Of a DNA stretch of 64,000 bases, positions 2-33,796 are shown in pieces (the stretch's first letter is position 1; every line of letters starts with the position of its first letter). Below the pieces are notes generated by a model. That model ran no database searches and was not told the DNA's origin. It saw nothing but the letters and a program-made list of their open reading frames with translations. The translations under genes were made by a program, and so were the position numbers. The stretch covers positions 2,046,001 through 2,110,000 of the forward strand of contig CDRNST010000091.1 of assembly GCA_977016875.1 (NCBI GenBank). The letters run 5' to 3'. The DNA comes from Pavona decussata. Taxonomy: Eukaryota.

Positions 2-1492
2 CAGAACGCTTTTCCTGCGGCTCAAACTCAACTGGGAGCAACTCCAATGCAATATTCTTCCTCTCCAACGCCAGCAACCTTTAACAATGGGTTATTAATG
101 CAATCAGCACTGCAAGTTCCTCTATTGCAGTCACAATCTGTGAATCCCACTTTCGATTTGCCACCACAATCGGCCGGACAGTTTCTGTTTAATAACCAAC
201 AACCTGATGTGCGGTCTTTGTACCAGCTTCAGCCACAACCTCAGGTGCAAATCCCTCAAGATACCATGTCACAGATTGCACAGCCGCAACAGTTTATATT
301 TCCAGCCCAAATGCAGATGACGTCAGATGTGCTCGGCTCAGCAAGGCAACAGGTTACGAGATTACCTAGTCGGTGGGTAGATGAAGATGGGCGTGAACGT
401 AGTGAAGTATTGGATCGTCAAAGAGACAGATCAGATGATGACGGTTCTCAAGATGACAGAAGTGAGGACAATGATGAATACGATGAAGAAGCAACGCATG
501 AAAGCAGCAGATACTATGACAAAGAAGACGATTCTCGGAGAGAAGACGAAGACGCTGATGAGTTAGATCAGACGCAAGACTATGCGCCTGAGCGATCATA
601 TTCTCGAGACGATGGTAGGTCTTCGGAGGAGGAAGGGGAGGACACAGAGGAGCCTGAAGGGGAACCTGCAGAGGATGCTACTGGTCGGTACGGATCCTTT
701 GGGAGAAATGATGCAGCCACGGACAATGAGGAAGGTCCAGATACTCTTTCCCCAGAAGAAGATGATGACGATGATCAAGACATTCCACCACAGGAAAATG
801 CCTTTGCCAGACAAGGTAATACACAGCAGTTTGATCGTCACACAATGCAACGTTTCCTGGGAACGAACCGGGGCTTTAACTTCCACAAATTAGAACCGCC
901 CTCAACCCAAATGGACGCCCAAACGTTTTCAAGGTATCAACTGACTTCTCCTTCCTCAGCCCTTAAAGAACATATTTTACCTACAAGCCAAGAACCTAGA
1001 CCCACTATAGATACACCCGAAGATACACACCTTAAAGTCTCCCAGATGAGCCAGGCGGAAGCCCAGTTTTTGGAAAATAAGGCAACCATGCAACCAATGT
1101 TTGCACCTCGTATTGCATCTAAAGACAAAATTCCTGGGAAAACTAAAAGACTTCGGTTTGGTCTGGGAAACGTGCTAATTCGTTTGAACGGAAGACCGTT
1201 GGAAGATTCCTCTCAACTGCGAAGTAAGATCATCAATGGTCAGATTATACAAGGAAAAGGAAAACTGGTCAAATCGAAAGGTCCAGTACGAGTGAAACTG
1301 TCACATACTAAGGACGCAAGGCATCTAAAGATAATTGACATAATAGCGCCAAAACAGTCTCATGTATACGATACTAAAAGTAAGATCAGAAAGCCTACAA
1401 ACGTTTCGAATGAAAGTAATAAAACAGATACAAAAATGGATTCATCGCCTGCCAGTAAAAGACTGCAAAAGGCACTTGATACTATCACATAA
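2..1492 (+). CDS. 3' (terminal) exon of an uncharacterised low-complexity protein: Gln/Pro-rich, then Asp/Glu-rich, then Lys/Arg-rich C-terminus; 5' end lies outside the window
   Basis: The ORF 47..1492 frame is already open from base 2 (CAG AAC GCT TTT...), so the ATG at 47 is probably internal; stop TAA at 1490-1492. Block-like composition. Confidence 0.8.
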   Translation, partial: QNAFPAAQTQLGATPMQYSSSPTPATFNNGLLMQSALQVPLLQSQSVNPTFDLPPQSAGQFLFNNQQPDVRSLYQLQPQPQVQIPQDTMSQIAQPQQFIFPAQMQMTSDVLGSARQQVTRLPSRWVDEDGRERSEVLDRQRDRSDDDGSQDDRSEDNDEYDEEATHESSRYYDKEDDSRREDEDADELDQTQDYAPERSYSRDDGRSSEEEGEDTEEPEGEPAEDATGRYGSFGRNDAATDNEEGPDTLSPEEDDDDDQDIPPQENAFARQGNTQQFDRHTMQRFLGTNRGFNFHKLEPPSTQMDAQTFSRYQLTSPSSALKEHILPTSQEPRPTIDTPEDTHLKVSQMSQAEAQFLENKATMQPMFAPRIASKDKIPGKTKRLRFGLGNVLIRLNGRPLEDSSQLRSKIINGQIIQGKGKLVKSKGPVRVKLSHTKDARHLKIIDIIAPKQSHVYDTKSKIRKPTNVSNESNKTDTKMDSSPASKRLQKALDTIT

Positions 1493-2012
1493 ATACTGAG
1501 AGGGATACAACGGCAGTTTGAAAACTAAACCAGAATGAGTCAGCGCAGGGAGTTACGCAAATGTTCCATCGATATAGCGTCCGTATTCAGTGGCGACTAA
1601 TTATTGGCTCGAAAGTAAACGCAACTGTTAGCGTAATGTAATGTAAATACCGTTTTCTTCTAGGTGTACCAAAGCTTTGTGTCAAAAATGAAGATCACTC
1701 CTAACGTACAGAAAAGAACTAACATCTTGAAAGCGATCCAAAAAAGATTAAGTCGAGAACTCTACAGTTTATGTACCATTTGTAAACATTACAGAACAAG
1801 GGTTCAAATTTAAATTAGAAAGAAATGGAAAATAGGAACTTGAAACATATGCAGTACTCGTGGTGTCACTTGCTGACTAGCTACCAAACCTTCCATTGAA
1901 ATAGTCTCGTACATCCCAATTATCATTAATTAAAAATTGTCCACGCTAAGTGCTCTTACGTTTTTATGACCCTTTCTCTCCCAGCGCAATTTCGGATGCC
2001 AAGTAATTTCAG

Positions 2013-2249: not shown

Positions 2250-3477
2250 AAATATGCAAGATAGTGACAGCATGCATCCTTCAATGTTCTTGAGGATATC
2301 ATTTACCGTAATGTAGCCGTAAGGATTTTTCCATGCTTGCCAGGTATCGAAAAAGCGATAATGCTACTGATTTGATGGGACAGGCATGTCATCACTTTGA
2401 AAATCCAAATAGCATATTTACGTCAGGATGTATTTTGCTGCAAAACTGAAATTAAAGAGAATGTGCAGTAACGGATGGGTGGGATGGAAATCGGTTGCAA
2501 CACGTAAAAGTGCGGAGGAATTTTTAAGCACTTGCCTTTTTTCTAATAGTAAAACTTAATACAAGCAAGATAATGAGAGATATATACGTTTAATAAAAAA
2601 AGTGACCAAAGCGTACAGGAAAATCCCCGTGACACAGCTTTCTTTATATTTGCACAAGCTACAAAAGTGCCTTAGATTTATATGTCTCTAACGCGCACAC
2701 TTAATAGCAGCATGAAACAAACACAACCAAATTAAACAAATGCAAATTGTACTAAAACAAAATCACAGTTTGTTTTAAATTAGGCCATTTAATTAAATGA
2801 CGCTTTCCTAACTTTCTCCCCTCTCAAGAAAAGACGTTCTACTTGTCGGTTGTTCGATCGGAAAAGAACATTTTAACACACTCAAGGTTTCAAAATATGG
2901 GAGAACGGATTAAATCATCTTTATGATTTATTTTTTGCAGCCATACAGGACTAGTCCTTCAAAACACGTTTGCAGGTGTTTACAAGGTCTTTATTTACAT
3001 GCCCTTTAATATGTATTCAAAGGGACTGAAAGTTAAAAGAACAAATAACATGGAGAAGTAAGTGATCAAGAAGAGCTTCTTCCCGTGAGAAAAAAGCACT
3101 TCCCGGATTGCGCCTTTTCGCAGGAACAAGATCTACAGACAAACCGACAATTTGCCCCAGAATGTTTTAAAATTGCTCAATATATAATATCTTTTTACCT
3201 AGCCGTTTAAGAGAAAAGCATCTCACAAAGATTAGATCAGATGCAACATAAACCTTTTAAATAATTCATAGAGACCTGGTTTTAAGACCAATCAGAGTTT
3301 TCTTCGTTGACAGGAGGAACCTTGCTCAACGCTTATGTTGGATGGCCTTCAATCTTGTAAGGATTTCCCCTCCCGGCTGGGCGGGCATTGCGATGTGATA
3401 GATAGCAAAAACTAGACCATTGGCTCATTTCAGCAAGCGGTGAAATATCGCCGTTTTGACTGTGGAAAAGCGTCACT

Positions 3478-6400
3478 ATGACTAGAATTTGGGTTTTATT
3501 GGTATTGCATTTTATTTTACGGACCACGATTTCAGGTATGACAGTTTAACATTTCCGCTGCTTAATGTTTCACCTTATCTCTTGTACATTAAACAACATT
3601 AAAGTCACTTATTCTGCAAAATACTTAGGGTTGAGATTCCAGACTTCTAGGCCATTTCAAGTAACGATAGTCTTTATTCATTGAACCAAAATCAGAAATA
3701 CACTCTCATGGGTTACAGTTCATTCGATGGTGTTGTCAGAAAAAGTTAATTTCCAATGCATATATAACACTCACTTCACAAGGATTTGTTATTATCAAAA
3801 ATTATGGTAGATTCTAATTACAAATATTTTGTTTCAGTGTGTAAAACTAATCTGAGTTTTACAGCTTTATAATTAAGCAGCGCACCTGAGGAGAACCTGC
3901 TTTTCTTCACGCTGTCTCAATAACGTTGTTTGTTCTGCTGAGGGCGCGGCTGGTGGGAATCAATGGCTATTCATTAGCTAGCCGTGAAGTTCACGCCTCG
4001 GCGGTCAATCCAGTTTCGATTAATCCTTGCCCTTTCATTCGAGATTAACTAACATGTTCCTGTTCAGGTTAAGCTTGGTTGCCGAGCTGAAATTTTCTTA
4101 ATAATTTTTTACCTGTTGAATTGGAATTCGAGTTGAACATGTGGCATCAAATCAGTTATTTCCGGAGGAGCATAAGTTCAATAAAGACTAAAGTCATGGC
4201 CTTAGGGGTCTGTTTACACGTGCGGTTATTTTCGGCAATATTTTCGCACTTTTTAATACAACTTTTGTTGTGTTCGAGCTCACGAAGAAAATCGTAGTAG
4301 TGATCTGTCAAAGCGATATCGCCGAGGTTTCGAACAAGTTCGAAACTTCATGCAACTTGGTGTCGACCCGGACGAAGTTGTAGCAAATCGTAGCAAATAT
4401 CACACCCGAATCGCGCCCGAATCGGAATGTGATCGCCCCCGGTTTACAACTGCGATTTTCACCGCAAGCTCAAGCGAGTCAACAATGCGACAAAAATCGC
4501 ATCAAAATTCACCTGTGCAAACGGCCTTTTAGGCAGGGGTTCGGCAAAACATACAAACATATCTGTGCAAGATATATTTTCAGTTGTTAAATAATTGGAA
4601 TGTATCATTTTAGTACGTATTCATTGACATTCAGATTCTCGGAAAAGAATCGAGGATCTGTGCTTTCGTGAAACGCGTCTCACGTGAATGACTCCTAATG
4701 TCACTCCTTGAGTCGTGTGATGTTATTCAAGCCGTCAAGTCTGTGAATTAAACCATTTAAAGTGCACCTAACCCCCAAATGTTTTTTTCTCTTAAATAAA
4801 TCTTTGCACCTCTTCGAAACATATTGTGCTATTTAGCGCCTTTTTTAACCAAATCTTGACTTTTTATAGGCTGTAAAAGTTACGAAATCTAGCCATCATC
4901 TTTCCCATGACCGAGCTAGTAAGGGGCATGGATCTATTCCTTACATGACGTCACAAACTGCTTTGCATACATTTTCACAAAGACTTAATACAATGCAAAT
5001 CAGTTTGTGACGTCAAGTAAGGAATAGACCCACGCCCCTTACTAGCTCGGTCATGGGACAGATGATGGCTAGATTTCGTAACTTTTACAGCCTATAAAAA
5101 GTCAAGATTTGGTTGAAAAAGGCGCTAAATAGCACAATATGTTTCGAAGAGGTGCAAAGATTTATTTAAGAGAAAAAAACATTTGGGGGTTAGGTGCACT
5201 TTAACCTCCTTCAAAGTCAAAGACATTCTAAATAAATTACGATTAAAGAACAATGTTAGTCAATTACAAGAAATTACCAGCATCAACGCATCATTGGCGA
5301 TGGATTGGCAATTCCACCACTGATTCAAAACCACGGTTGTGCAAGCTAATTGACTTCATATTATCAGCTGACAACTTTCGCAGTCATAACATAAGAAGAA
5401 CCAATGAAATAGTTGTTGAATATAAATTACTTTATGTTTACTCAAAATAACCACAACTGTTTCAGGAAAATGTAGTTTTCAACTACATCTTTCAGTAATA
5501 GTTTCAAATGCAGACTGCCTTATAGGGTTGAGACCGGAGTAACATAAAGGGGCTGTTTGGAATCCTTTCTAGATTTACCAATCCTTGATTTATCTTTTCG
5601 TTTTTAACGTTTCCAAGCTGATGAAGTCGAAAGTAAAGCAGACAACATGGCTAAGGCGATAGCACAGCAAAATAAAAAAGTTGAAGAAGAGAGTGACGCT
5701 ATGGAAAAAGCAATTGACGAGAGAGGAAAGCAAGTGGATACCAAAGAGCAGGAAGACAAATTTAAAAAAGCAAGTGAACAGGTTGATGCCGTGGGAGACG
5801 CAGCCGAGGGTAAATTTGAACAAAAAGGTGAGTCACTGCAGTTCTCTCGAAAATATAAGGATTTAGGTCGTCTATCGTTATAATTTTGCCAAAATTTTCT
5901 AACACAACCTCAACAACCGCCTAAAGAAATTCGCCGAAAGCTGGGCTAGATTTTCCTATTGAAAAGGTTCAAACTAGCAAACGTTTAAAGAAGAGAAAAA
6001 CCGCTAATATTCCACAGTTTCTAAAATGACTAATCAGAGAAAATTCTCCATAACGAAATTTCGCAAACCTTACGTGGCATACTCGTTCTAGTAACTGCAA
6101 AACAAAAAATGAGGCAAATCAACAGTAATGAAACGACCGGTGACGGTGGAAGACGATGCACATCTCGCTAAAGGCATTTCTGTATACTTAAAATAGTATC
6201 CCACAATTTTTTCCTCTCTCGGCAGCCAATTTAGTGGACAAACTTGCTACTGATGCAAACAGCGCCATTGAAAGTCAAGCAAAAAAAGTAGAGGAACTAG
6301 GCTCCCAAGCTGATCTGTCAGAGGATAATGCTAGTAATTTGGTTGACAAAATCGGTAAGTGGCGACCGCTCTAGCCAATGTTTGTAATAAAGTCATCAAG

Positions 6401-9400
6401 ATATGTTTACTGGCTTGTTTTCATCAGTATGATCGTTCCAAACATTTCAATCATATCCAAAGATACTTAATCATATCCTCAACCTTAAGGTTACGTCGCT
6501 TTAATAGTGAAAGCAGAGGTCCGGCTCTCAAAACTTCGAGAAGAATATTTCAGTGGGCTCGAGAAGTAGTTTTCAAATCCGTTTCATCGATTGTGGGTAT
6601 TTTCTGTGCAAAATTGCCGTTGTGATGCTTAATTAATGTTGTAAATTTCCAACTTTTTAGCTTCAGAATTTAGTATTAAAATTCGAATTTCCGATAATGA
6701 ACACTATGCAATAACATAATATCGTATTAAATTCACTAATTTTAGGCAGGTTGCGTTCGATTGACCGTATTCCGCAATAAGAATAAACGGGGTTTAATAT
6801 ATTTCTCTTTTTAAGTAAATTTGGGACGACATTTTGGCAAACTTTCGCTCAAAGCACGAAAATTTAAGAGCCATTTTGTATTCCAGTAACTCAAAAAGAC
6901 CTTTTATAAGGGAGTTCTTGTCATCATTGTATGAATTCCTATTCCGGAATAGGGTCAATCGAACGTACCCTTAGAGCATACACAACGCTCAAACACAATA
7001 CACGGGGAGCTTAAGGCCAGGTTACCAACATCAAGATTTCACGCTGTGAGTTCCGTGTTTCTATAGGCTAATTGTTTGGTCGACGAGAGATGAAAGTTAA
7101 AACCATTTTCAATTATTCCATTAGCGGGGAAGGTCGGTTAACGGATCGAAAGATAGATCACCCCTGCGTAGGCACTCAGATTGTCTGGGCTGTCTGATAA
7201 TCACACTGATTAGATCCAACATGGAGGAAGTTTCTTAATTTCTTAACGATAACTTCACTTTGGGCACAAAAGGTATTGAAAACTGGCAGCGGAATCAAAT
7301 GGAATTGGAATTTCCCTGTGTTTACCTCACCTGACTTTCCTACTCTGCAGGACGTCTGCACTTGTCCATCTGATTCTCTACTCATGCCCAGTTTATTCTC
7401 GCCACAAATCAAGGGGTTTTAAATTTTTCGGTTCAAAGAAGGAAGCTTGCGAACTGAACGGGTTCTTTTATCCATCTGGTGCAGTTAAGGACATGGATGA
7501 TAGCTATTATATTTCTCTCCTCAAATTTTCAAACTGCTTTGTTTGATCGACAGGGAAGCGTCCTGCCTCTGTGTCTTTCGAAACAATCAACTTCTTCCTC
7601 TCCATTCATTCTGTGTTTTAACTTTTTGACTGACAACGACAACGACCGTCTTGACGCAAGTACGGGACACGTTTTGCAACATGAGACTTTTAACTCACTA
7701 ACTTTTGACATGACAGCTGGAAATGAGACTTACTGAGAGAACTGATATTTTACTATCAACTGAGATCTACATCTACATTTATAGATGGCAAAGGTTGCCC
7801 ATCGCGCCACGGCAAGCGCATTCATTCGTTCCCCGTCACCGTGTTGCATTTCGTTTTCCGTTGTCGCCAAGAAGCTCGTACACCGAGTCTCGATTTTCGT
7901 ATAAAAAATAATTGCATTGCGTGTAAATTTGCAAAGGTAAGCAAATCGAAAAGGAAACCACTGGCTCCACGGAACCAAAATCGCGGATGAGTATTTCCTA
8001 CATGGTTCACGTCCCCAAGGAGCCACACGCTGACCAGATGATACAGAAGGCCTCGGATTACAGTAAGGATTACGATGACTTAATTCAATCAAATCAAGAA
8101 GCATTAAGGACGTACCCATGGCCTGGCAGTTACAAAACGTCCACACCCTACGACAACCAAGGGGAGGAGATGGCAAGTGACATCAACACTAAGGCGTTTG
8201 AAGATAATAATGACAAAGTCGAAAATGATGCGCTGGAGAGCGAAGGATATGAGGTATCTCCGGGCGCGCGCAGGAACATCAGGAAGCTGTTCTACATGAG
8301 CCATCTGCCATTTCGTTTCCCACAACATAGGAGACACGGAAGACATCACCATCATCGAAGACCCGAGAAAGCGTTATCAGTTCCACCCACTGCTAAAAGC
8401 AGTGATGTCGGGTTGTTTGTATTGCCAAGTGGCGGTCCGAGGCTGTTGTCGCCGGACATAAAGAATCAGCTGGAAGATGATCAATTATTGAGGAAGACAG
8501 CCAGAGAACCCCTTAACGATGATGAAGGTAACATAAGTGAGTTGTATTCTAGTGGTGGATCAGAGAATTAATTCTGCAGTGTATGTTAAAGTTCTAAGTG
8601 AAGCCATGCCATGGGTTCGATTCACGCCGGGGTCGGAGATTTTTTCTTCGTCTTATGCGATCTCCCATTCCCTTATTAGGGCTAACACTCGGTGGGAAAT
8701 TCAAGGGTTCACTTTACCACTTTAGCACACGTACACTGAAGAGTTAATTCTCTGATCCATCATTTGTGACCTTGGTGCTAGCGGCACAACATTCATTTGT
8801 GCCCTCCTTTATTCTAGTGGGATCAACTTGACTGTTTCAAATACAAAAAAGAATATAAAAAATCCAAGCTTTCATCTTGAAAAAATGAATATAAACAGCG
8901 CCAATGGAAAGTATTTCACAAGAGATTTTATTCGAAACGATGAATGGGGTCGCATGGACAAATTCCTTATTTATTTATCCTCTATACCATGTCAATTTCT
9001 TGACTTCATTCATGGAATGGTTTCGATTTTTTTTTCAATGGCGTGACAGTGAAAACCGACAATACAACAATAATACCACATGAAAGAACTTACTTAAGTG
9101 GTCACGATTTCATCTCCTGGAACGTTAAAACCACATAAATATAGAAAGGAACACAGTCCGTCTGTAGGAGTGAAGGCTTGAACCTATTTATTTCCTAACA
9201 GGGCTTGTTTCCTTTTAACACCGCAAATTGTAAAAATTACGCCTAAATATGCTTCACTGGATTTAAATCAAAGCAAAGCCGAACATTTTCTCCAGTAGAA
9301 CACAAGAAAGACCCGGGCTCCCTTTAATACACACTACTCAACGATNNNNNNNNNNNNNNNNNNNNNNNNNNNNNNNNNNNNNNNNNNNNNNNNNNNNNNN

Positions 9401-9836
9401 NNNNNNNNNNNNNNNNNNNNNNNNNNNNNNNNNNNNNNNNNNNNNNNNNNNNNNNNNNNNNNNNNNNNNNNNNNNNCGGTGTTTGATTTACCTCTGAATT
9501 TTATATTTTACCCTTGCCCTTTCCACAGACATGGACATTACAAATGAACTAAAAACAAGCGCAACTGCAGAGAATGATGTAGAACGACAATGGATGAAAA
9601 TTAATGGCTTAGGCAGTCAGGAACTGAAAATGCAGTGGCCACATGCGAGCAGAAAATTTGGTGCTATTGGCGAACAAAAGGTTAGCTTAGTAAGTCCAGG
9701 GGAAGTTGATCTACTTCAAACAGCGTACCCTGACTTCAACGAGCCCAGGTCTATGGGCAGCCGTGATCTCTTAGCAATCATCAGGAGCAAGATAAAAAAG
9801 AAAATAGCTGTGGCTTCAAAGAAGGATAAAACGTGA
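3478..9836 (+). CDS. Gene 1: predicted secreted ~431-aa protein (signal peptide, helical repeats, His/Arg tract)
   Basis: Exons 3478-3535 (MTRIWVLLVLHFILRTTIS, G|GTATG), 5618-5827, 6226-6354, 7937-8527, 9529-9836. All introns are GT-AG and phase 1; total 1296 nt, no internal stop. The 7937 acceptor (TTTGCAAAG) is weak, and the gap at 9346-9476 could hide an exon. Confidence 0.7.
4202..4531. mobile_element. Degenerate MITE
   Basis: Imperfect TIRs GGTCTGTTTACACGTG / CCTGTGCAAACGGCC; CpG-rich interior. Confidence 0.5.
4757..5204. mobile_element. Near-perfect fold-back MITE with TTAA target site (Kolobok-like)
   Basis: TTAA-AGTGCACCTAACCCCCAAATG…CATTTGGGGGTTAGGTGCACT-TTAA; arms of about 200 bp, almost identical in reverse complement. 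Confidence 0.92.
6748..6972. mobile_element. MITE
   Basis: TIRs GTTGCGTTCGATTGACCGTATTCCG / CGGAATAGGGTCAATCGAACGTAC. Confidence 0.7.
8555..8790 (+). mobile_element. tRNA-derived SINE-like fragment preceded by an inverted copy of its own tail
   Basis: B-box-like GGGTTCGATTCACGCC near 8613; 8557-8592 is the reverse complement of ~8719-8758; same family as 14336-14572. Confidence 0.55.
9346..9476. other. Assembly gap
   Basis: Run of N. Confidence 1.
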
Positions 9837-10141
9837 GACAAGGCAAGAATTGGGGAGTCTCTTTTATGAATTGGTTGTGACAAAACGCGTAAAAGTTGAA
9901 AAAAAACTATTGCCCCCTTAAACCTGCACTAAAAGATGAAAATGAAAGTAATGGTGTACGCATTCTTCAAATCTGGTTTTCGGCTTCTTCTTGTGTGCAT
10001 TAAAGTTAGCTTGAGAACTCTTCATTTAAGGACTCAAAACAAGGCAAGTCAGGCGGTGGAGTGTTTTACGACACACTGAGAAATAGTGCTTTGTAAACGA
10101 TAATCTATGAAACTTAAAAGGGATGTGGGAAACAAGGAGCC

Positions 10142-11279
10142 GGGGCCCGTTTCTCGAAAGTCCCATTAACTTACCATGCCCGAAAAGGATTTTGTGTGTA
10201 AGGTGTTTCTCACCAGGGATTCAATTTTTACTGATTGCACGTAAAAAGTCAACTCTATTCATATCTTATTCATTCTTTCATCCACAATTCAAATGTATGT
10301 ATTTCATATAATTCACTTTCATCTCATCCCCTCTACCGGTATAGATTGCCAATTCACAAAATGACCACCTCCCAGTTGGCTTGATAGCTCAATTGGAAGA
10401 GCACTGCAAAATAACATGGTTAAAAATCCCAACTGACAGGAGGCATACCAGCTGACTATTCACAAGCGTGGCCGAGGAATTGAACTCGGGGCTACCGAGA
10501 AAAAACTCCAGCAAGCGGCCAGAGCGGGACTTGAACCCGACCGCTCGTCCACGCTGCCTCCACAAGTATCGCAGAGGTCATGGGTTCGTTTTTCCTTCAA
10601 GCCTCTTCATATGAGCCCGGTAACCGAGCTGGCCCAGTAGGTGGGACGAATTTTGTCTTCTGTCTTCTGTTCATATGGGAAATTTGATATGGGAAATTTA
10701 AATGTCCAAAAGGCCCCCAAAATACCCGTGGAACCACGTTCCGACTTGTCAGCGACCATACAAGCCATGCGCAGTTGAAAATGTTTCGTCACGGACAGTC
10801 CCGGTATCCGGGCTGGAGTGTTCATATGGGAAAATTTCCAACACGGTTACCGAGCTCTCGGTATCCGGGCCAGCCCGCCTTCTCATATGAACACATCGAA
10901 ATTTTGTAAAGAAAAGAGCGACGAGGCGAAATCTCGGAAACCGAGCCAGCCAGGTCGACTGGGCTCATATGAAGAGGCCCTAAGTTGGGTACATAACTGC
11001 AGTGGTCATTCTCGTATAATAATAATAATTTATTCGCTTCAGATTGCGCATTCTCCATGACAAGATGATCAAATGCGCATTACAATAATTACAAAAGCAC
11101 AATATGTATATAAAATACGTGTGACAACAGTATTGAAGTGACGAATCCTCTATATATTCTATATCTACCTATCTACTATATTTACGATTCATTCAACTAA
11201 ATACAATTGAACAGTTTGATCTAAAATAAATTTTTGTTCGGACCTAGTAACTTTTCGAGACTTTCGGGAAACGGACCCG
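10142..11279. mobile_element. Composite nested element: outer MITE carrying SINE fragments and an inner MITE (~10599-10982)
   Basis: Outer TIRs GGGCCCGTTTCTCGAAAGTCCC / GAGACTTTCGGGAAACGGACCC. Inner TIRs GCCTCTTCATATGAGCCC / GGGCTCATATGAAGAGGC. tRNA-like TAGCTCAATTGGAAGAGCA at ~10385 and GGGTTCG at ~10582. Confidence 0.75.
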
Positions 11280-17788: not shown

Positions 17789-17892
17789 TGTTACCATATA
17801 GGAGACACAAGATGACGACTACTGCGCTTTTGCCATGGTAACGTTTGCTTTCGGGTCTAATTCATGCTCGTTCGACGTTCTCATTTTTTGTC

Positions 17893-17933
<41 letters not shown>

Positions 17934-20100: not shown

Positions 20101-20358
20101 GTTCCACATAAATGGTCAAACTTTTACGATTTCGTGAACAGATTCAAACATTTTGTCCAAACTGATTTTCAAAAACGACTTCAAGCTTACTTACTACACA
20201 ATGCGAAACGAAAGCCAAAAGTTTCCCCATTTCCCCATTAAGATTTCCCTTAATTTCATAAGGAACTTTTCGCTACCACCGAATTTATATATCTATATAT
20301 TTTAGCCTTTCGCTGGTAATCTAACCCTAAATTGCCTCAGCGAGGTCTGGCAAACCAT

Positions 20359-21042: not shown

Positions 21043-21089
21043 TTCTTCAAGGTAACGTGGCATCTGTTTTGAGATTTCGCTCATACAAC

Positions 21090-23180: not shown

Positions 23181-23895
23181 CGCAGCGTACCCCGCTGGGA
23201 CATTAGCAGTTTCTTGGGTAGAAAATAAACTCAGCGTTTAATCGTAGGTTGAATCGTTCTTACATAAAACAAACTTAAGAAATCCCCCCTTTAAAAGTAT
23301 GTGGTAGCGCTGCAGATTTTTTTTTTTAATCCCCTTACCCCCCCCCCCCCCCCTCCCTCCGTGCGCGCTTCACCAACGGGAAAAGTAATCGTCCGTTGGA
23401 TTGTAACGTGTAAATTGCCCATTTTAAAGTAACTGCAGAAATTCTCGCGCGCGCATTGGCTAATTTTCCTTGTCAATGAGCGGACAGACACATGAATTTA
23501 TAACTTATGCGATGTTTACTCAACGAATGAGAACGGTGAATTTGAAAACAACCAAACGTCAATGTGCAATGTGTCACTTTTCAACCAATAGAAAGTCTTC
23601 CTTTTTTCCATCAACCAATACGAGAGATTTCATAAAATTTAAGTTTCTATATTTTTATCCCCTGTTTTGATTTCATTTTGTCCCTTCTTGCTTTTTGTTA
23701 TAGTAAAAAACCAAGTTGACCTCGGTTTTTCAAGCGTCTGTTATGTTATTGATCATTAATTTCGTCATAACATTGTCAAAGTAGTCTGCGAATTCCCACA
23801 GCTACTTTGACAATGTAATGACGAAATTCATGATCAATAACAGGACAGACGCATGAAAAACTGACGTCAATTTAGAATGGTAATTGAACAGAGTG

Positions 23896-24218
23896 GAGTG
23901 CAATTTGGTTTGAAATCATACGCGTGATTTCAAAATCCAACGAGCGCGCAGCGCGAGTTTGATTTGAAATCACAAGTATGATTTCAGACCAAAATTGCAC
24001 AACACAAAGTTCAATTACCACTTTATTACACCTATTTTGAAATCACAGAGTATCATTGTCAATATTAATATTCTATTTTTATTACTTCATTTTCATTTTG
24101 ATAGGCTAAAGAAAGGATGCGATTTAGAGCAAAAAAATGGTGCAATTTGGGAATAAATCGCACTGTTGAGAACCAATCAGATTGCAGGGATCACCAGTGA
24201 TTTCAAAATGGGTGTAAT
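23896..24218. mobile_element. Small non-autonomous element with an internal region complementary to both termini (DIRS-like architecture)
   Basis: Near-identical to 43590-43938; absent from the paralogous site near 16778. Confidence 0.75.
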
Positions 24219-24319
24219 AAGTTAATTAATTTTGCAGTTGCGTGCTTAGTGGCCTTTGAATGGAAGCGAGGCTGGAGTTGAGTTTGTTTTGATACAAACC
24301 TGACTGCTTTTCATATGTA

Positions 24320-24614
24320 GTTCTCAAACTCATTAATAATTCATCAAGAGAAAACAAAGAAAATCACTACCGTGACCGTGGTTTGGATATGTGATCCTAA
24401 TTACCATAAAATTTTGCCAACTTTAGCCTTGAATTTCTCCAAGAATTATGGATCATCTGAGAAGCCATATCAAACACTCGAAAGAGTGTTTAATCAGATA
24501 TCAAAACACATCGAAGTCGTTTAAAAAAACTCGGCTGCGCCTCGTTTTTTCAACCTACTTCTCAGTGTTTGGATATTTGATGAAACATTCTTCCTCGTGT
24601 TTGATATATTACAT
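24320..24614. mobile_element. Insertion with a 3' fold-back inside the MITE of duplication copy 2
   Basis: Absent at the paralogous site (CATATGTAG|ATCATTCTG, ~16881); hairpin 24467-24608. Confidence 0.7.
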
Positions 24615-25451
24615 CATTCTGTTCCTTGCTAACTAGTTTGCTTTTAACTATGAGGAGCACTGAGGTTTGTATCAATAAAAAGACAACTCCAGCTTCGCTT
24701 CCACTCAAAGGCTAGGTTACTAAGCACATAACTGTAAAATAAGTGATTGGCCCATACGATTGGCAATAAGGGCACTGCGTGCGTTTCAAGTAGGACTGTG
24801 TGGCTCTCCTTATCTGGTCGAAAATGGAGATGTTTGGTTCATAGCAGAAAGGGAACAGGAGACGAGAGATGTCATGGCAACCCCAAATGGATGTGATTTT
24901 GTGTCTTACTTGGCGTACATTATTGGTGCCAATTTTGAATAAGATCACTCCAATATTTTTATTTTGAGATCTTTCTTCATTGGGGTGCGATTTGTGACGT
25001 CATCAACTTTTGAACAAAAATTTTTAATATCTGCGGAAAAAGAGAAGATATTCAAAAAAAAAAACACCATTCTTATTCTCTTTGAAAGGCCTTTCAAATA
25101 GGTAAAACTTATTTTTCACTTCATGAGCACTTTAATGGCTGGAAGCTCTCTGCTTCCTCAATGTCCCCAGGTAGATTGTTCCATAAGCTGATTACCCTGA
25201 TAAAAAAAGAACGTTTATACCAGTTTAGTCTCTCAGGTTTAATATTAAGTTAATTGTACGAGTGATTAGCTCTGCATAGTGGACTGCTCTGTGTCACACA
25301 AAGATTGCTTCGCTCAACAATCTAAAGTACGCTGAAACAGAATTATCAGATGTGGATAAATACTCAAATTTTATTTCATTCAGTGCACTTGTTGCACCCT
25401 GTGCTGTAAAATTTAGACTCAACCGCCTGAATAGCAGTCTATCACGGAAGG

Positions 25452-26091
25452 CGGATAGGATTGATAACAATAAATATCAAAAATGGTTTTAAAAGAGACT
25501 CAGACGTTTCGGGTATATAACCCTTCTTCAGTGTGGAGAAAACCGTTGAATTACGCTACCGGACACACGTGCACATATGAATAGCATATGAATATCCTGT
25601 AAACGATGCCCTACTATTCTTTGGTGAAACCGGGCGGAGCCTTAGGATTCTTTTTAGCGAACTCTTACGAAGTATCCGCAACAGCACTCATGGATACCCT
25701 GTGGCCCAAATTTTAACCACACAGGTCACAGTATTTCAGATATCCGGATGTGGGGTATACAGTTATGCAATGGGACAAACCTCCAGCGCAGGCAGCGTGA
25801 AATGAGGTTGATTTTCCAACTTGGAACTGTTCAGCCGGATGGACTTAACGTCAATTTTAGCTAAATTGAATTGTAACTTTTAATGCGTGAGCGCGTTTCT
25901 ATTCATATGCGCGCGTGTGTCCGGTAGCGTCAACGGTTTTCTCCACAATGAAGAAGGGTTATATATATCTGAAACGTCTGTGTTTCTTTCAAAACCATTT
26001 TTGACACTTTTTGATATTTATTGTTATCAATCCTATCCGACAACATTTTCAAGTGTCACGCATCTCCAAGGAACTTCCTTTCACCGTTCAT
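25452..26091 (+). mobile_element. Penelope-like element remnant (GIY-YIG C-terminus + pLTR, with an inverted partial 5' pLTR)
   Basis: Frameshifted GETGRSLR…RSIRNSTHGYPVA…REMRLIFQLGTVQPDGLNVNFS*; 25452-25585 is the reverse complement of ~25899-26039; flanking repeat TATC(A/T)CGGAAGG; absent in copy 1 near 19015. Confidence 0.85.
25498..25536 (-). ncRNA. Minimal type-I hammerhead ribozyme motif in the Penelope pLTR
   Basis: Minus strand: CCACA-CTGAAGA-A-GGGT tatat ACCC-GAAA-CGTC-TGAG. Confidence 0.65.
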
Positions 26092-27599
26092 TATCTCGGA
26101 AGGTGCATGAGAATATCCACTATTAAACATGAAGGGATTGCATAACACAAGAACTTTTGAGGACCATAAGTTCCTGCATTAAGTTTGTATACGATAAGTT
26201 CGGAAATTGCCAGAAGAGTTTGATTTATGCATATTGCATGGTAGATTGTTCTCCAAATCTCGAGCAAGAGAAACTTCTTGCTTGTGACCAAGAAGGAGGC
26301 CAAAAGGCGGAGAAAAACTTGTGGGCTGTCATAAAACAGCAGGTTTTAACTTCCAAAAGAAGAAGGTTAAGTCACAGTTACTTCCCACTGCACTCATCTC
26401 CAACAGATTACCTTATCGCCGGGTTCAGTTCACATCAACGAGGAATTTTTCACCTTTTGCTTCTTCGCAGCAAGAATGACGTGATACCAACTGTAAAAGA
26501 TTTTTGGTTTTGTACATTTACGATGCAGGTACGTATTACAGTTTCCATTCTTGTTTAACTGTTTTCAATTTTCTCATTTTCTTTAAACGAGAGAAAATCA
26601 TTAGAACGTGCTGGCAAGAGGGATTTTCGCTTTTGTGATTTTAAATTAACGTCTTGCCTTTGCCAAAAGGGTCTTCATAATTGCTTGTTTTATTCTCTAT
26701 ACAATGTTTAGCTTTTGCTGATTAACTCGTAAGAGTGCACGTGCTCAAAACAGGATCATTTTCAAGAGGAAAAACGAGGAAAATGAAAAACATCAAACAT
26801 TTTGGTAGCTCTCACCAGGGGCTCCCGAGGAGAACACTTAACCACAATAGTGGCCTTTAAAGGCTTGTTTGTGTAAACTAATATAGTTTGATCTAGCTGT
26901 TCGGATTCTTTAGCTCAAAATTTTAGTTGCAGAAGGGTTTACGACATGTAATCTTCTTTCCCGAATTTACGAGGTGTTGGTTAGCTTTATGAAAATAAAA
27001 GCTGACCTTACTTCGCATTTCAATCGAGATATTTGGCTTGAACATCCGAAAACAAAAGGAATTAGTTTTTCAGTGTTGTGAAATTTTGAGCTGACATTTT
27101 GCTGAAGAAAACTTTAAATGTTCTTTAAAACTAAATCCGAATTTCTGAGGCGATCAAGGCCTTCTCAACAGACCTTCACCGAAATGAACCGTTGCCCTCC
27201 ACCCCCTCCCCCTCCGTTCCACCTAAATGGTCAAACCTTTACGATTTCATGAACAGATTCAAACGTTCTCTCCAGATTGATTTTCAAAACCGATTTCAAG
27301 CTTACTTGCTACACGATGCGAAACGAAAGCCAAACGTTTCCCCATGAGAGTAGATTCCCCTTAATTTCATAAGAAACATTTCGCTACCACCTGAATTTTA
27401 TATCTATATATTTTAGCCTTTCGTAGGTAGCATAACCCTAAAATGCCTCAGCAAAGTCTGGCAAGGCATCATTACAAGTTTTATGCAAAAGATTGTCTCG
27501 CGTCGCGCTTTAAAAAAGAGGCATAATGCAATCGTAGCTCTAGCATTGAACAAGGCTAGTTATATCGCTGCTTTTATGTTATTTCATTAACTTGTTCCA

Positions 27600-28044
27600 T
27601 TATCCATGGGCAATAGGAAACATGGGTTTCGACTAAGCAAATTATAATATTACATTTATCTCAAATACAGTTGAATTACTCACAATGAAATAGTCTTAAG
27701 TCTTTTCTGGTCGTTTCCCCCCATTTATTTCTTGTAGAATAGCCCTGCTTAACAAGTAACAACGCGCCGTTTGACTCAGTACAAATTTAGCCTGCACTTT
27801 TTAGTGTTAACGCTCACGCGCTTAGCGGCTGTGCCTGGGGTTTCAATAACATGGCACGGTTACCAAGACTTAACGAATGAAGGCTGGCGATATAAGAATG
27901 TTATGGCTATTCTACAAGAAATAAATGGGGAGAAACGACCAGAAAAGAGAAAAGACTACTTCATTGTGAGTAATTCAAATTAATTTAAAATAAATGTGAT
28001 CTTTATTTAGTCGAAACCCATGTTTCCTATAGCCCATGCATAAT
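27600..28044. mobile_element. Long-TIR fold-back element immediately upstream of gene 3
   Basis: Arms of ~140 bp (…CATGGGCAATAGGAAACATGGGTTTCGACTAA / TTAGTCGAAACCCATGTTTCCTATAGCCCATG…); absent from copy 1. Confidence 0.8.
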
Positions 28045-28135
28045 CGTGTTAATCTATGCACTGCTATTTTCTTCAAGGTAATGTGGTATCTGTTCACTTT
28101 GTAATGAAATAAAAAAGATATTTCGCTCATACAAC

Positions 28136-31100
28136 ATGGCTTTCAGAATATTACCGATGCTGTTTCTGGCGATGTTCTTCTGTCTTGGTGAGTATAGCGT
28201 GTAACGACGCCAGCTTATCAGCTTGTAAACATGTACTTTATATGGGAAGCAAGGAGCAGAAAAAGCCGGCGAGCGAAGCAAGTAAAACGCGGACGGAGAG
28301 AGTGGGGAGAATGAGGCACTTTTTCCCCAGTCCGTGCTCGGCTCGCTCNNNNNNNNNNNNNNNNNNNNNNNNNNNNNNNNNNNNNNNNNNNNNNNNNNNN
28401 NNNNNNNNNNNNNNNNNNNNNNNNNNNNNNNNNNNNNNNNNNNNNNNNNNNNNNNNNNNNNNNNNNNNNNNNNNNNNNNNNNNNNNNNNNNNNNNNNNNN
28501 NNNNNNNNNNNATAACACGGGGAGTGCTTTTGCAATCTCCTAAGCCAGAGGCCCATGATAAAGTGCTTCATAATAATCCGGATCAAATATAATTGGAAAT
28601 TGGAAATTTTATGTTTTTGAGGAGAGCGAAAAACCAGGAAAAACACCTGTCTGAGCGTCTGAGCATGGACGAGAACCAACAACAAACTCAACCCATATAT
28701 AACGCCGAGCCCGGGGATTAAACCAGGGCCACATCGGTGGGAAGAGAGTGCTCTCACCACTGCGCCATCTCTGCTCTCCAAGATGTGATAACTCTAAAGG
28801 GTGCGCAATAGTATACAAAAGCCACACTTGTAATCAATTTCTTACTCATAACCTTGATCCGAAGATTGTTAATATTGGTCAAATGGCGTCCACTGATTTC
28901 ATCTCGCCTCTTTTTTTATGCGAACGTTTGGTTTTATCAACAGAATTACAAATTTTGACTTTGAGTGTTTGTGAACGACAACTCACAATTAGCAGTAGAA
29001 ACAATATAAAATATGATATAAAAGTTTTAATCGGCTACAGAACAAGCGTATACTAAACGCTCATGTCAATTTTGTCATTACACTTCTAGCTACAGCGGAG
29101 CAAGAAAACCACCGCAAGAACATCCAGATTCTTTTCCTTCCAGCAGACGTCATGAGAAACATGCGCAAAAACCATACAGAAAACGAATTGCTCCCAGGCT
29201 TACCAGGCCAAGGTGCTAAGCCCTGGATCCCTGTCCGCCTCCCTGGTAACAAGACACGTTTATTTGAAATTCGCATCAATCCACTCTTGGCTCGTAAGCT
29301 TCACCTCAGCTTACAACATTTCAGCATCGGTCACGGCTATGGCCTGCTTTTAGAGTTGAAAAACGTGTCCCTTTCATCAAAAGGACAAACCGTTTTGGAC
29401 AAGCTGGTAGAGTTTTACAAAAACTGTGGCGGAAAAGAAAAGTTTTCTCGTTTAAACATGACGCAAAGGATACGCAGGCCACGTCCCTCTCTGATGCTAT
29501 CCGGAAACATTGCGCTAATGAAACGTATTCAAAACGCGCTTAAGCATTTTTCGCCAAAGCGTCTTGAGGGCTTGACGGACGTTTTGAAACACAACAATTC
29601 GAGTGGTGTAGCACTCCACCTTATCCCGTTGACTGGCATGCGACAGAAAGTGAATAAACTAATAAAACGAACGATGGCGACCAGGGGCTGCGTTAAGATC
29701 AAGACTAATGCATTGACGCATGCGCTGGAGGTGTTCAGGAGAACAATAGAGAGCAATAGAAACATAACGAGGGTGAACAAGAATGAAAGTACCAACCTTG
29801 GTCACGGGAATGATGCACGCAAAACGGATATCCATGAAAACAACAACAATAACACCATTAACAACGGCAGCAACAATCATAATAGCAATAATAACACCAA
29901 TAGCATCAATATCCTTGGCAACAACAACAACAACAACAACAAAAACAATAGCAACAACACCAATAAGAAAAGCAATGAAGAAGTCAAAGAAAGAAAAGAA
30001 CTGTCGTTTCCTCGTGACCTGAAGTCTTTTAGTATACACCCAGAAAGCAAAATGAATTTTGCATCTTCTTCTGCTATAAGCTCCACCGGTAATACTGCAG
30101 TAACCAAAATTGTGTCTGCTCTCTCCAGTCCCAGGAAGATGATTACCCATGTGCCGCTGAGCGGTGCTAACAAGAAAGCGAGCCAATTGCTGCTTAAGAA
30201 GAAGGACGAGGCCACGAGCCTTGAGAGCAGCGAAGAAGAAAATAGAGCTCATGTCAACACCTTTACCAACGATATAAGCAGCGTCAACGGTAAGATGAGT
30301 GACGAGATGGGGTTTGAGTTAAGTGAAGTAAAGAACGTGCCTAATAAGATGGTTATCGACACTGAATTTGATGACAAGCAGAGGAAGAGCAACGCAAGCG
30401 ACAGCTACAATGACGGAAATGTCGACGACACCGGTAGCTGGAATGGCCAGGAGAAAAATGGTGCAAAGGCATCGAAGATGAAAACTAGTCAACAAGATTT
30501 ATTTACGAGCAAAGCGAAAAAGGGGAACGATTCAATAGAAGTTCAAAGAAATGGTTCGAAAATTCTAGCCGGATTCGGTGGAAATGACCGTAATACTCGA
30601 CCTGTCAATCAAACTGTCAATCCTTTTCAAACTGTCAAGGGCTCAAAAGGGATCAAAGACAGTAAAAATATACTTGCACTTAGTGGACCTCCCGAACAAA
30701 CCACTACGATCAATAATAAACAGAGCAGAAAGGAGCCTCCAGTAACTTTCTACTACAAGCCAAAGAGGTTAAAGCTGCATTTCAAAGGCAGAGAGTATGC
30801 GAAGGAGGACCACAATGAAGATGACTTGGACAGCGAGAGTTATGAAGGCGAAGGACGATTTTTGAAACTGGTTCACATGCGAAGCCGCAAGCCACGTGTC
30901 AAGGGAATGAAGCCACAAGACGAGCGAAATGAACAGGGTGAAATTACGAAACAAGATAACCTTGAAAAACAGAATAATAACCAGCACAGAAAATTTGGCG
31001 ACTCCCCAATTGATGCAAGCTACGATGGTAACGTAGACAATACGAAACTTCCCTTAGAAGGGGAGTTTCGAAGGCTTGGAGCCCACGGTTTAGGGTCCCA

Positions 31101-33796
31101 CAAACCAAAGTTAAAGAGGTTAAAGCTGCATTTTAAGGGTAGGAAATACCCGAAGGTCAAGGAAGGCAATGACGAGGATGATTTGCACAGTGAAAGTTAC
31201 GAAGGCGAAGGACGATTTGTGAAGCTGATTCACATGCGAAGGCGTAAGCCACATTTCAAAGGAATGAAGCTGCAAGGCAATCTAGATGAACAGGGTAAAC
31301 CTGAAAACCAGAATAATAACCAGCACAGGAAGTTTCACGACTCCACAGTGGATGCGAGTTACGATGGTAACGAAGACAACATGAAAGTTCGGTTAGGAGG
31401 GAACGTTGTTAGGCTTCGAGGCCACAGTCACGCATCGTTCATTCACAGGCGCAAGAGACCCAAAATTCGTGTTGTCTTATATGACAATAATGAAGAAGAG
31501 GAAAAGGAACGACACAATCAAAGCTGGCGCAACGGCAAGAGCGAAAAATTAGCAGAGAAAATTCACGAAGATGACTACGAGACCGAGTCGGAACCCATGG
31601 ACAGTGAAAACGTAGGGAATTATGAACAAGATAACTCAGATTCTGATGTGTCTGACAGTATTGGAAATGATGATAGCAGCCACCTTGGACGAGGCAAGAG
31701 CGCCGGTGAAGTGCCTGACTTGGAGCCCTATCTTAGGAAAAACTTCGGTTAGTATATCGTGTATTAGTATAACACGGTGATCAACGAAAGGGACATGTAG
31801 GGTTGTTCCTAGAATGGATACCCCAAAAGAAGGCTGGACACCTTATGGTGTAATGTAATATTCTTAATCGTGATAGCCCTGACGTAGAAGACAACAGAAG
31901 CCGATTCGTTAGACAGAGAACTGAGAGAATAGAGTTCCATTTAGGCAAGGAATATCCGTTTTGGGGGGTTTAGCACTGTTCTACACTATTTAGGCCTTAG
32001 CATTGTCATTTGTTGTCATGTCGTAAGTTATAAATTACTATTTTCGTCAGCTAGCCTAGCTCTTTGTTCTAGTGAATATGGATAGAAGGTATCAAGCAAA
32101 TAACCCTGGTTCGAGACCTACACTAACTTGACTTTTTTAAACTTCATTTTACCGTTCGTAAGATTTCTATTGTGTAAACATCATAAGGTGGCCAACCTTG
32201 TTTTCAAGTATCCATTCTAGTATCAACTGGACGTCTAGTTTTCGATAGAACGTCATGGGTACGCGCGCAAGAAAACTTGCCGATCTTACAAACCAACTAG
32301 CTAGAAAGAGACTATTTTTTTCTGAATTTCTTTCTTGAATAGATTGGTTACTGGGTTATGGGTTATGCTAAAACAATCAGACGGCTCTCTCTGTTTCTAT
32401 CGGCTTTAATGGTTGGCTTGGGGCTTGGCCTCTAGACAACTATCAGACGAAACAGCTTGCCGCCTAATTGTTAGATATAGAGGACAAATTCATAAGCCAC
32501 ATTGACGAAAACGGCGTCGGTTTTTACCAGTCCTTCTTTCTCGGGTTCCCCAAATGTACTTATAGGCGCGTTCTTTGATGACCCCCCCCCCCCCCCCAGC
32601 CCCTTTTTTGCAAGTTGTCTCGTGCCAACTCTGTGACTACAAATCACATGCTCGCATTTATGAACCAGCTACAACTTCAACTTGGTTTGTTCACGATTTT
32701 GTCGCGATTCCAGTGCGATGTCACTGCAATTTCTAGTATCCGGGTTTTAAGTAGATAACATTGACCAAACTGCAAGGAGGTCTTTGTTTGTCATAGACAC
32801 ACTTGAGGGCGAAAAAAGGGATTAAATTAAATAAAGAAAATTGAACAGAGATCGCGTGTGTAAACGGTTGGGAGCTGGTCATTGTGTGAATTCGTAATAT
32901 AGCTGTAGAGGTAAAGATAATTATATGAAATCCATGTATTCCAAATGCAAAAGAAAGAACTATTAAATGGAACTGAGCCATCACAATTATGTTCGTTTGC
33001 AGCTTTTTGGTTTCAGGATATTTTTCGCAGTTGCTTACGTTGCGTGCATTACCGCGGTGGTTTATCATTTATTAACTCTTTTATCCGCTGCTCAAAATAT
33101 GAGAATTTCATATAGTTAATTTCCATCTGTCTTGTTTTTCATTCAGAGGACGAGGAAAACGAGGAGAGCAGAGAAATCAAGTTGTACACAGATCAGGATG
33201 TTGAACTGGGAAACACCATAGCTAAAGCAACCAGTAGCACGCCAAAACAGGGTGATGGTGCAATACTCGAGGAGCCAACGATGAAATTGGTTGGCAATGA
33301 GTACGAAGAACCAGGGAGAGATCCCATTCAGAAACTGCCATTTAAAATGCAAGAAGATTCGGAGGGGCTTGGCACTAGTCTCCCTAGAGATCCGCCCCAC
33401 AATGCGTTTGGGCAACATGATATGGATGTGTCAGCAAACTCAGTGATGCCACCGGATGAATCACTTTCGTTTCCTGAAACTGCACAGCAGTCTCCAATGA
33501 CAGGCACGTCGGAGACGGCAACACCTGACACCGCAACATTTTCAGATGATAATTATCAACCCAGCGAAACAACGCAAATGGCTGATTCGACGCCGTTCCC
33601 ACAGGACAGCCTCAGTATGACACCACAGCAGACTAGCGAACCGAATGTTGGTACTCAGTCTATGACTTCCGACATGCAGCCTGGGGAGATAAGAGCGGTG
33701 ATTTCCGGTCGCACGAAAATGGCGCCAAAAGCTGGCTTCAGGAAGACGGTGAAAAGTAAAGGTCCCGGAGTAAAGAAAAAACATTCCGACAAATAG
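28136..33796 (+). CDS. Gene 3: predicted secreted ~1119-aa protein (N-terminal domain, poly-Asn tract, two ~110-aa internal repeats, acidic Ser/Thr/Pro-rich tail, basic C-terminus)
   Basis: Exons 28136-28187 (MAFRILPMLFLAMFFCL, G|GTGAGT), 29090-31747 (ORF 29152..; donor G|GTTAGT), 33147-33796 (ORF 33182..). Phase-1 introns; 3360 nt in frame. Confidence 0.82.
28349..28511. other. Assembly gap
   Basis: Run of N. Confidence 1.
30757..31425 (+). repeat. Two ~340-bp intragenic repeats in gene 3
   Basis: KRLKLHFKGR…SESYEGEGRF.KL.HMR.RKP..KGMK…QNNNQHRKF.DS..DASYDGN.DN occurs twice (starts ~30757 and ~31102). Confidence 0.9.
31809..32220. mobile_element. MITE
   Basis: TIRs CTAGAATGGATAC / GTATCCATTCTAG. 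Confidence 0.6.

Follow-up and report, generated by a model that had tools for sequence, protein, structure and literature searches.

What kind of locus is formed by the run of large open reading frames (ORFs), alternating between strongly acidic and strongly basic blocks, that fills the first 34 kb of a 64,000-nucleotide stretch of the stony coral Pavona decussata (contig CDRNST010000091.1, positions 2,046,001 to 2,110,000; G000:C91:2046001-2110000 in our numbering of this 602-Mb genome; hereafter the window)? An earlier note, made from the letters alone, had taken it for four to five tandem genes of an orphan, probably secreted family making an extracellular material such as skeletal matrix. 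In our hands the large ORFs in 1-34 kb resolve into three genes, here called 0, AB and C, and one partial duplicate of the last, C'. The reading we favor, with a probability of roughly 60%, is that the block is a conserved micro-synteny of three sequence-unrelated secreted polyampholyte genes in hexacorals, together with a truncated gene C copy, and that it is not skeleton-specific.

Exon maps were drawn from tblastn searches with orthologous proteins, the ORF list and a reading of splice sites, with every feature treated on the + strand. The start of the region was covered by added sequence, 10 kb upstream (L003) and a locus over the window start (L010), and all searches were done with single exons or with orthologue proteins. 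Of the ORFs previously counted as genes, those at 7987-9836 and 13214-16136 would be alternative 3' modules of AB, that at 33182-33796 is the terminal exon of the gene with its core ORF at 29152-31752 (gene C), and that at 21911-22618 is a truncated gene C copy from a tandem duplication, which a congener (locus L001) does not have. Signal-peptide micro-exons of 52-58 nt, which the earlier note had seen, stand at 3478-3535 (58 nt) and at 21090-21141 and 28136-28187 (52 nt each), all with a phase-1 end and a GT donor, and a fourth, the 58-nt exon of gene 0, lies just outside the window at L010:95-152. The phase-1 introns noted at the same time are found at most junctions and fail at the intron between B-module exons 4 and 5 (B-e4 and B-e5) of AB, which is phase 2. 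Genes 0, AB and C each open with a short phase-1 exon for a cleavable-looking signal peptide and continue into long exons in which a few conserved modules sit among low-complexity acidic/basic blocks.

Such a common design invites the interpretation that the genes are tandem paralogues, and profile comparison does not bear this out, since no pairing of genes 0, AB and C reached an hhalign probability of 1%: 0.3% for the gene C N-terminal domain (N-domain) against B, 0.2-0.35% for the last exon of C against the last exons of B and A, 0.8% for gene 0 against B and 0.1% for gene 0 against C. The sole positive profile match falls within one gene, where the terminal exons of the two AB modules, A-e5 and B-e6, are paralogous (93.6%, E 2.2e-7, 41 columns) and would go back to an old duplication inside the gene; no such relationship holds between A-e4 and B-e4 (A-e4 against B, 0.7%). 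The short motifs said to recur across the genes have no statistical support either, the N-domain of C and B aligning over just a 10-column W..V..P segment with a probability of 0.3% and P = 0.2. One of the quoted pairs, RFGLGNVLIRLNG in gene 0 and KVRLGGNVVRLRG in gene C, comes apart in the orthologues, in which the gene C motif is not conserved: KVRLGGNVVRLRG reads RLL[RK]KLRWLR.HG in Oculina, Stylophora and P0004 and RLLRKLRNHG in P0005, so the likeness to gene 0 is confined to this genus. Because there is no profile homology among genes 0, AB and C, the recurring motifs do not speak for common descent, and the like architecture of the three genes would reflect convergence or a common secretory-gene design.

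Nor are the genes orphans or specific to this lineage, as had been proposed, because all three recur, conserved, in other stony corals, and AB extends as far as Nematostella. A word search returned 32 relatives of gene B, Desmophyllum among them, with Nematostella in addition, and 26 of gene C, including Oculina, Stylophora and many coral assemblies. In a full HMMER scan of 1.84 billion representatives, a profile of the gene C N-domain found 9 proteins, two of them remote matches that share the N-domain and a ..PDLKPYL.. exon end. We regard as true orthologues XP_078343832.1 (LOC144629489 isoform X2) and XP_078344618.1 (LOC144630187) of Oculina patagonica, XP_022800617.1, XP_022800621.1 and XP_022800624.1 (named "IWS1 homolog") of Stylophora pistillata, KAJ7353794.1 of Desmophyllum pertusum and XP_032241471.2 of Nematostella vectensis; all are uncharacterised and none has a described function. 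Identity to scleractinian orthologues is 45-65% for AB and 53-60% for the N-domain of gene C; the AB orthologue of Nematostella has diverged further, with ~39% in the B module, and a gene C orthologue was not found in Nematostella. Exon structure is the same wherever it could be checked in the orthologues. What sets the genus of the window apart from them is that its gene C has diverged furthest and carries a repeat within exon 2, and that the additional truncated copy C' is present. To judge from these sequences, the gene families look confined to hexacorals, yet old.

The conserved linkage that the earlier note had made a test of its reading is present. The order AB-C recurs in Stylophora, in Oculina and in three coral assemblies of ENA, and 0-AB-C in one distant coral; at the level of loci, it is found in a congener (L001, L004 and L008) and in two more distant corals (L002/L007/L009 and L005), with gene 0 upstream of AB in L009. 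The merged genome-paper models PFX19293.1 (Stylophora) and KAL9958827.1 (Oculina) likewise run A-B-C. Selection on the genes is purifying, with ratios of nonsynonymous to synonymous substitution rates (dN/dS) of 0.25-0.5: 0.25 for B-e4 and 0.48 for gene C exon 2 against a congener, and 0.26 for gene 0 against a distant coral. Around the genes, transposon-related sequence was seen at several places. On the minus strand of a robust-type coral locus, upstream of AB (L005:1-3394), lies an ORF of 1,100+ codons that resembles B-family DNA polymerases and probably belongs to an element of the Polinton/Maverick type; comparable places hold a DDE_Tnp_4 transposase in L008 and an RVT_1 fragment in L006, a remote gene C-like locus with transposon insertions upstream. 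Transposons often target the spacers between the genes of this block, yet the order of the genes persists.

Gene AB extends over 3478-16136, with exons 1-3 common and followed by either an A or a B 3' module:

3478-3535, + strand: AB exon 1, signal peptide, 58 nt; donor G|GTATGA, phase 1; matches the signal peptides of P0060 and P0083
5618-5827, + strand: AB exon 2, acidic amphipathic helical repeats, phase 1-1; tblastn with P0060/P0062 at 76% identity, and splice sites
6226-6354, + strand: AB exon 3, last shared exon; its phase-1 donor fits the A-e4 and B-e4 acceptors
7937-8527, + strand: A-module exon 4 (A-e4, short isoform), His/Arg-rich block and LVLPSGGP motif; tblastn and splice sites
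9346-9476, unstranded: assembly gap in the intron between A-e4, which ends at 8527 with donor G|GT, and A-e5, which starts at 9529
9529-9836, + strand: A-module exon 5 (A-e5), terminal, stop at 9834-9836; paralogous to B-e6
13245-14157, + strand: B-module large exon (B-e4); acceptor phase 1, donor phase 2
14790-15178, + strand: B-module exon 5 (B-e5); tblastn, splice sites and a contig from a probable RNA run
15631-16136, + strand: B-module exon 6 (B-e6), terminal, with a conserved NG.IGGQPISVVNP motif and a strongly basic tail; tblastn, splice sites and contigs

The former "gene A" and "gene B" are best read, on sequence grounds, as one gene with two alternative 3' modules, because in Oculina LOC144629489 (isoforms X1 and X2, the latter P0083) the B module (LTNQ..IEPSKVVVFPD) follows without a break on what exons 1-3 encode (..KIG), the Nematostella protein XP_032241471.2 (P0085) has the same architecture of signal peptide, helical repeats and B module, and in the window the phase-1 donor of exon 3 is compatible with the phase-1 acceptor of B-e4 (G|GG, giving Gly). 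Judging by the orthologous models, gene AB would make at least two products from exons 1-3, a short one ending in the A module and a long one ending in B. No conserved candidate for a signal exon private to B was found in 9837-13245, nor in L004 and L005. The junction drawn by the merged models from inside A-e5 to B-e4 was rejected as a prediction artefact, since the window has no GT donor there. In B-e4, a conserved beta/alpha domain of ~100 residues is accompanied by a tract of poly-Asp/Glu and by a basic helical part with conserved Cys; the orthologue alignment shows an invariant Cys in the B module, and the B-module exon is single copy in this genome.

Contigs of runs from the same organism, guessed to be RNA, were aligned with 10300-16200. 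They cover B-e4 at 13368-13601 and 13691-14055; one piece, at 14790-15177 with unmatched flanks, stops 1 nt short of the end of B-e5 at 15178, a position whose G could equally be assigned to the next exon, and others begin at 15630 and 15651, near the start of B-e6. Outside repeats, the introns have hardly any such contigs, the 5' junction of AB is uncovered, and the high run depth at 10300-11087 and 12270-12466 is repeat-derived. Two further observations concern this gene. About 270 nt 5' of the AB start codon (3206-3564 against L007:964-1321) are 79% identical in a distant coral, in which the gene C protein is merely ~41% identical; from sequence, this stretch looks like a promoter or an element of the 5' untranslated region. 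In the Stylophora model PFX19293.1 (P0059), a segment of ~50 B-module residues (..PARQAVESVKRTSEKIEPSK..GKG) occurs twice in tandem at residues ~455-560, which suggests a local duplication in the Stylophora assembly and may explain why the RefSeq Stylophora B model starts at an internal Met.

Gene C spans 28136-33796 and is built around a core ORF of 866 codons (29152-31752):

28136-28187, + strand: gene C exon 1, signal peptide (MAFRILPMLFLAMFFCL), 52 nt; donor GTGAGT, phase 1
28349-28511, unstranded: assembly gap in gene C intron 1 (28188-29089), beside a repeat; flanking exons in frame
29090-31748, + strand: gene C exon 2; donor G|GTTAGT, phase 1; orthologue mapping
33147-33796, + strand: gene C exon 3, terminal; orthologue mapping; contains ORF 33182-33796

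The orthologues of Oculina patagonica (P0008, 1080 residues) and Stylophora pistillata (P0018, 1051 residues) have a classical signal peptide at the start and run on beyond the end of the 866-codon ORF into sequence matching ORF 33182-33796, which is therefore the last exon of gene C. Exon 2 encodes, in order, an N-domain of ~230 residues, an Asn-rich and basic low-complexity region, the internal repeat, an acidic block and a conserved ..PDLEPYL.. exon end; exon 3 passes from an acidic through a Pro/Gln/Ser/Thr-rich part to a QPG.IRAVIS motif and a basic tail. The N-domain has two invariant Cys and a mean column identity of 72% over 25 sequences, and is found in this genome only at C and C'. 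Within exon 2, a ~330-nt tandem repeat (30762-31089 and 31113-31428, 75% identity) doubles a basic/acidic unit (..KRLKLHFKG..EGEGRF.KL.HMR.RKP..). As Oculina and Stylophora each have one unit, the repeat arose in the lineage of this genus. The assembly gap in intron 1 and that in the A-e4/A-e5 intron of AB are both intronic, and neither breaks a frame; in orthologue alignments no residues are missing across either gap-spanning junction, and the flanking exons are in frame.

The copy C' owes its existence to a duplication of about 7 kb, with breakpoints within B-e6 and within gene C exon 2:

15935-22594, unstranded: duplication copy 1 (~7 kb), 80-87% identical to copy 2 by self-blastn
22607-29706, unstranded: duplication copy 2, self-blastn
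21090-21141, + strand: C' exon 1, duplicate signal exon, 52 nt; phase-1 end, GT donor
21978-22618, + strand: C' exon 2, truncated gene C N-domain; stop directly past the duplication junction

The N-domain copy has 213 codons. Since it differs from C with a synonymous divergence (dS) of 0.16 and a dN/dS of 0.35, C' is an old copy and not an assembly artefact; the collinear congener locus L001 has a single copy of the duplicated segment. This genus-level tandem duplication added a gene C copy with signal peptide and N-domain only. Just 5' of the C' signal exon, at 20353-21043, a 172-nt unit stands four times in tandem (89% matches), with copies also in L001, and intron 1 of both C' and C holds a repeat element (21172-21651 and 28218-28781) with a conserved minus-strand frame (..ASHQCGPGSIPG..), one copy of which contains the assembly gap at 28349-28511.

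Gene 0 is cut by the window start:

1-1492, + strand: gene 0, 3' two-thirds of a single large exon, stop at 1490-1492; exon start at L010:1155

Its frame stays open for ~880 codons back from 1492 into L003, the acceptor of the large exon is phase 1 (ttttag|CC), and the signal exon (MASTTTWTWILFVLFTALT, 58 nt) lies ~1 kb 5' of it. An 806-codon ORF with the same position and orientation upstream of AB in a distant coral (L009:2799-5216) is its orthologue, with 68% identity over the aligned exon (811 residues), 63% by BLASTP over the part in the window, and a basic C-terminal region of ~100 residues that is nearly invariant. Head-to-head with gene 0, upstream of the window, we also observed a 474-codon ORF on the minus strand (L003:4288-5712; C91:2040288-2041712) that resembles it in design, with an acidic Pro/Ser/Glu-rich body and a Lys-rich tail, and, ~1.4 kb upstream of it on the same strand, a hydrophobic 64-nt stretch that may be its first exon, with GTAAGT as donor. 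At the corresponding place, L009 starts within a minus-strand product of 498 residues, so this ORF may be a fourth secreted-type gene of the conserved block.

The prediction that the proteins are secreted is supported, in that the signal exons keep their sequence, length class and splice phase across species and the RefSeq orthologues begin with classical signal peptides. The AB signal exon stays 58 nt long in L008 and L007, and that of gene 0 in L009; that of gene C measures 52 nt in L001, 49 nt in L007 and 46 nt in L005, with the donor GTGAGT every time. Kyte-Doolittle windows of 19 residues exceed 1.6 solely at the N-terminus in P0008, P0018, P0060 and P0083 (P0085 has none above this cut-off), and beyond residue 30 the maximum across these five proteins is 0.8. 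The alternation of acidic and basic blocks in the large exons, also described earlier, is strong in net charges per 40-residue bin, which run -13, -10, -12, -8 and then +6, +10 in gene 0, -19, +3, -13, +15 in B-e4, and +8, +19 in B-e6; the Gln/Asn tracts and basic C-termini are there too, gene C having a run of Asn and gene 0 a stretch rich in Gln and Pro. The proteins are mostly disordered, though not uniformly, because the gene C N-domain is conserved, the gene B module of ~100 residues could be modelled and gene 0 is 68% identical to its orthologue. In line with the earlier failure to recognise a known domain, Pfam gave nothing above threshold for any exon or orthologue. The AlphaFold2 model of the gene B exon has 10-residue block means of the predicted local distance difference test (pLDDT) of 64-85 over residues 21-110, and no convincing match by shape was obtained for it in the PDB (Foldseek), VIA wide or the ESM Atlas, the best being VIA Z 3.4, Foldseek E 0.2 and an Atlas template-modelling (TM) score <=0.25. 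For the gene C N-domain, AlphaFold2 with 25 sequences reached a pLDDT of 37.6, unusable for a fold search, and a profile search of PDB sequences and a feature search of the ESM Atlas gave no match.

Where would such proteins act? The published S. pistillata skeletal proteome lists its accessions in main-text tables, with 59 XP_022 and 15 PFX occurrences (PMC7115838). In this single data set, XP_022800617, XP_022800621, XP_022800624 and PFX19293 occur 0 times, as does the prefix XP_0228006. Because the Stylophora orthologues are missing from that table and AB has an orthologue in Nematostella, a skeleton-less anemone, the skeletal-matrix role once suggested is disfavored, and a skeleton-specific one is unlikely. 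The main text of a preprint on the Desmophyllum skeletal proteome contains neither the KAJ7353794.1 identifiers nor the word "uncharacterized", the orthologue accessions do not occur in those supplementary files of the Stylophora cell atlas that were examined, and a literature search by orthologue accessions and locus names found no paper mentioning any of them. The role would be common to calcifying and non-calcifying hexacorals and hence not skeleton-specific: the products would enter the secretory pathway and act extracellularly or in secretory vesicles as soluble polyampholytes, likely as content of secretory granules, gland cells, mucus or another extracellular matrix.

How do other explanations compare? 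A tandem, lineage-specific family of orphan secreted proteins that are cleaved at multibasic sites and then coacervate through their charges into an extracellular material, above all skeletal matrix, would account for the shared signal exon, phase-1 design and charge blocks, for adjacency on one strand with conserved linkage, for the abundant dibasic sites and for the short look-alike motifs, of which W..V..P is the only B/C segment aligned by hhalign. We consider it improbable, since profile probabilities lie below 1% for all pairs, one quoted motif is unconserved in gene C orthologues, the genes are not orphans, the proteome and anemone data just given speak against a skeletal function, and no match bore the name of a skeletal-matrix protein. 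The coral acidic skeletal proteins (CARPs, SAARPs and acidic SOMP) resemble our proteins in being secreted and having Asp/Glu-rich tracts, but no word-search or profile match was so named, the Stylophora orthologues are not in the table of PMC7115838, and AB has its orthologue in Nematostella. Somewhat less remote, and still doubtful, is a granin- or prohormone-like cargo of regulated granules in neuro-glandular cells, acidic and of the heat-stable type, sorted to dense-core vesicles and with some of its motifs released as peptides at basic sites. Like the granins (chromogranins and secretogranins), the coral proteins are secreted and largely acidic, with a signal peptide, numerous dibasic sites and small islands of strong conservation amid variable sequence, and the families occur in both anemone and corals; they nevertheless have no sequence similarity to granins or any Pfam family, and the basic sites around conserved motifs are not consistently kept between species. 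Intracellular, for example nuclear, disordered proteins with mis-assigned signal exons might be hinted at by the automatic names "IWS1 homolog" (Stylophora gene C orthologue) and "MATH and LRR" (Nematostella AB orthologue), by poly-acidic tracts followed by Lys/Arg-rich helices that resemble chromatin chaperones, and by the RefSeq Stylophora B protein (P0061), which begins at an internal Met without a signal peptide. Both names are unsupported, because Pfam finds no IWS1/Med26-type domain, nor any other family, in P0018, P0008 or the gene C exons of the window, and neither MATH nor LRR domains in P0085. With signal exons conserved and spliced in frame in the RefSeq models of Oculina, Stylophora and Nematostella, and the P0061 start lying inside a conserved exon beside the apparent assembly duplication of P0059, we judge an intracellular role highly improbable.

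Several points weigh against our own reading of three unrelated, conserved secreted genes. The signal-peptide calls are based on inspection and hydropathy. The junction from exon 3 to B-e4 rests on the Oculina and Nematostella models and on phase, not on RNA of this species; the runs behind the contig support are RNA only by guess, and Stylophora RefSeq splits A and B into two genes, with B lacking its 5' end. The alignments are shallow (effective number of sequences, Neff, 1.2-2.6), so that very old paralogy among genes 0, AB and C is possible. Absence from one skeletal proteome is a weak negative, as acidic or glycosylated proteins readily escape mass spectrometry. Taking these points into account, the best reading, as far as sequence can tell, is that the products are three conserved secreted polyampholytes whose role in hexacorals is a general one, secretory or extracellular.

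Among known systems, one comparable in outline is the vertebrate SCPP/SIBLING cluster of enamel, dentin, milk and saliva proteins, which likewise consists of neighbouring genes for secreted, acidic, disordered proteins with a short early signal-peptide exon and fast-evolving low-complexity bodies. SCPP genes are paralogues by tandem duplication, have phase-0 introns and carry the signal peptide and an SXE motif on early exons. Here, in contrast, genes 0, AB and C have no mutual homology, the signal exon ends in phase 1 and the introns are phase 1 with one phase 2. The comparison is offered as an analogy only and not as membership of an SCPP type. One could go further and speculate, with little confidence, that 0-AB-C is an ancient co-regulated hexacoral "secretory cassette", in which three unrelated polyampholytes stay neighbours because a single secretory cell type makes them together and they co-assemble by complementary charge blocks. 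If this were true, acidic bodies would pair with basic tails and vice versa to give a single material, extracellular or in granules, whose assembly would be tuned by the alternative tails A and B and by the new truncated C', and the block would be the cnidarian counterpart, in function, of vertebrate SCPP or granin systems.

Hexacoral genomes encode many uncharacterised secreted low-complexity proteins, most of which cannot be placed. At this locus, a vague "orphan cluster" has become three defined families with exon maps, a conserved order and orthologues in the model species Stylophora, Oculina and Nematostella, and the annotation of two genome-paper models, which fuse all three genes into proteins of ~2,070-2,090 residues, is corrected. 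The tandem duplication supplies a natural example of a new truncated secreted paralogue. Cumulatively, the locus has been solidly re-annotated and its conserved micro-synteny is of moderate interest; cell-type expression, proteomic detection and knock-down are now testable in Nematostella and Stylophora. If the genes of the block prove to be co-expressed, they would represent a rare conserved clustering of non-homologous secretory genes; if not, they would be ordinary conserved uncharacterised genes.

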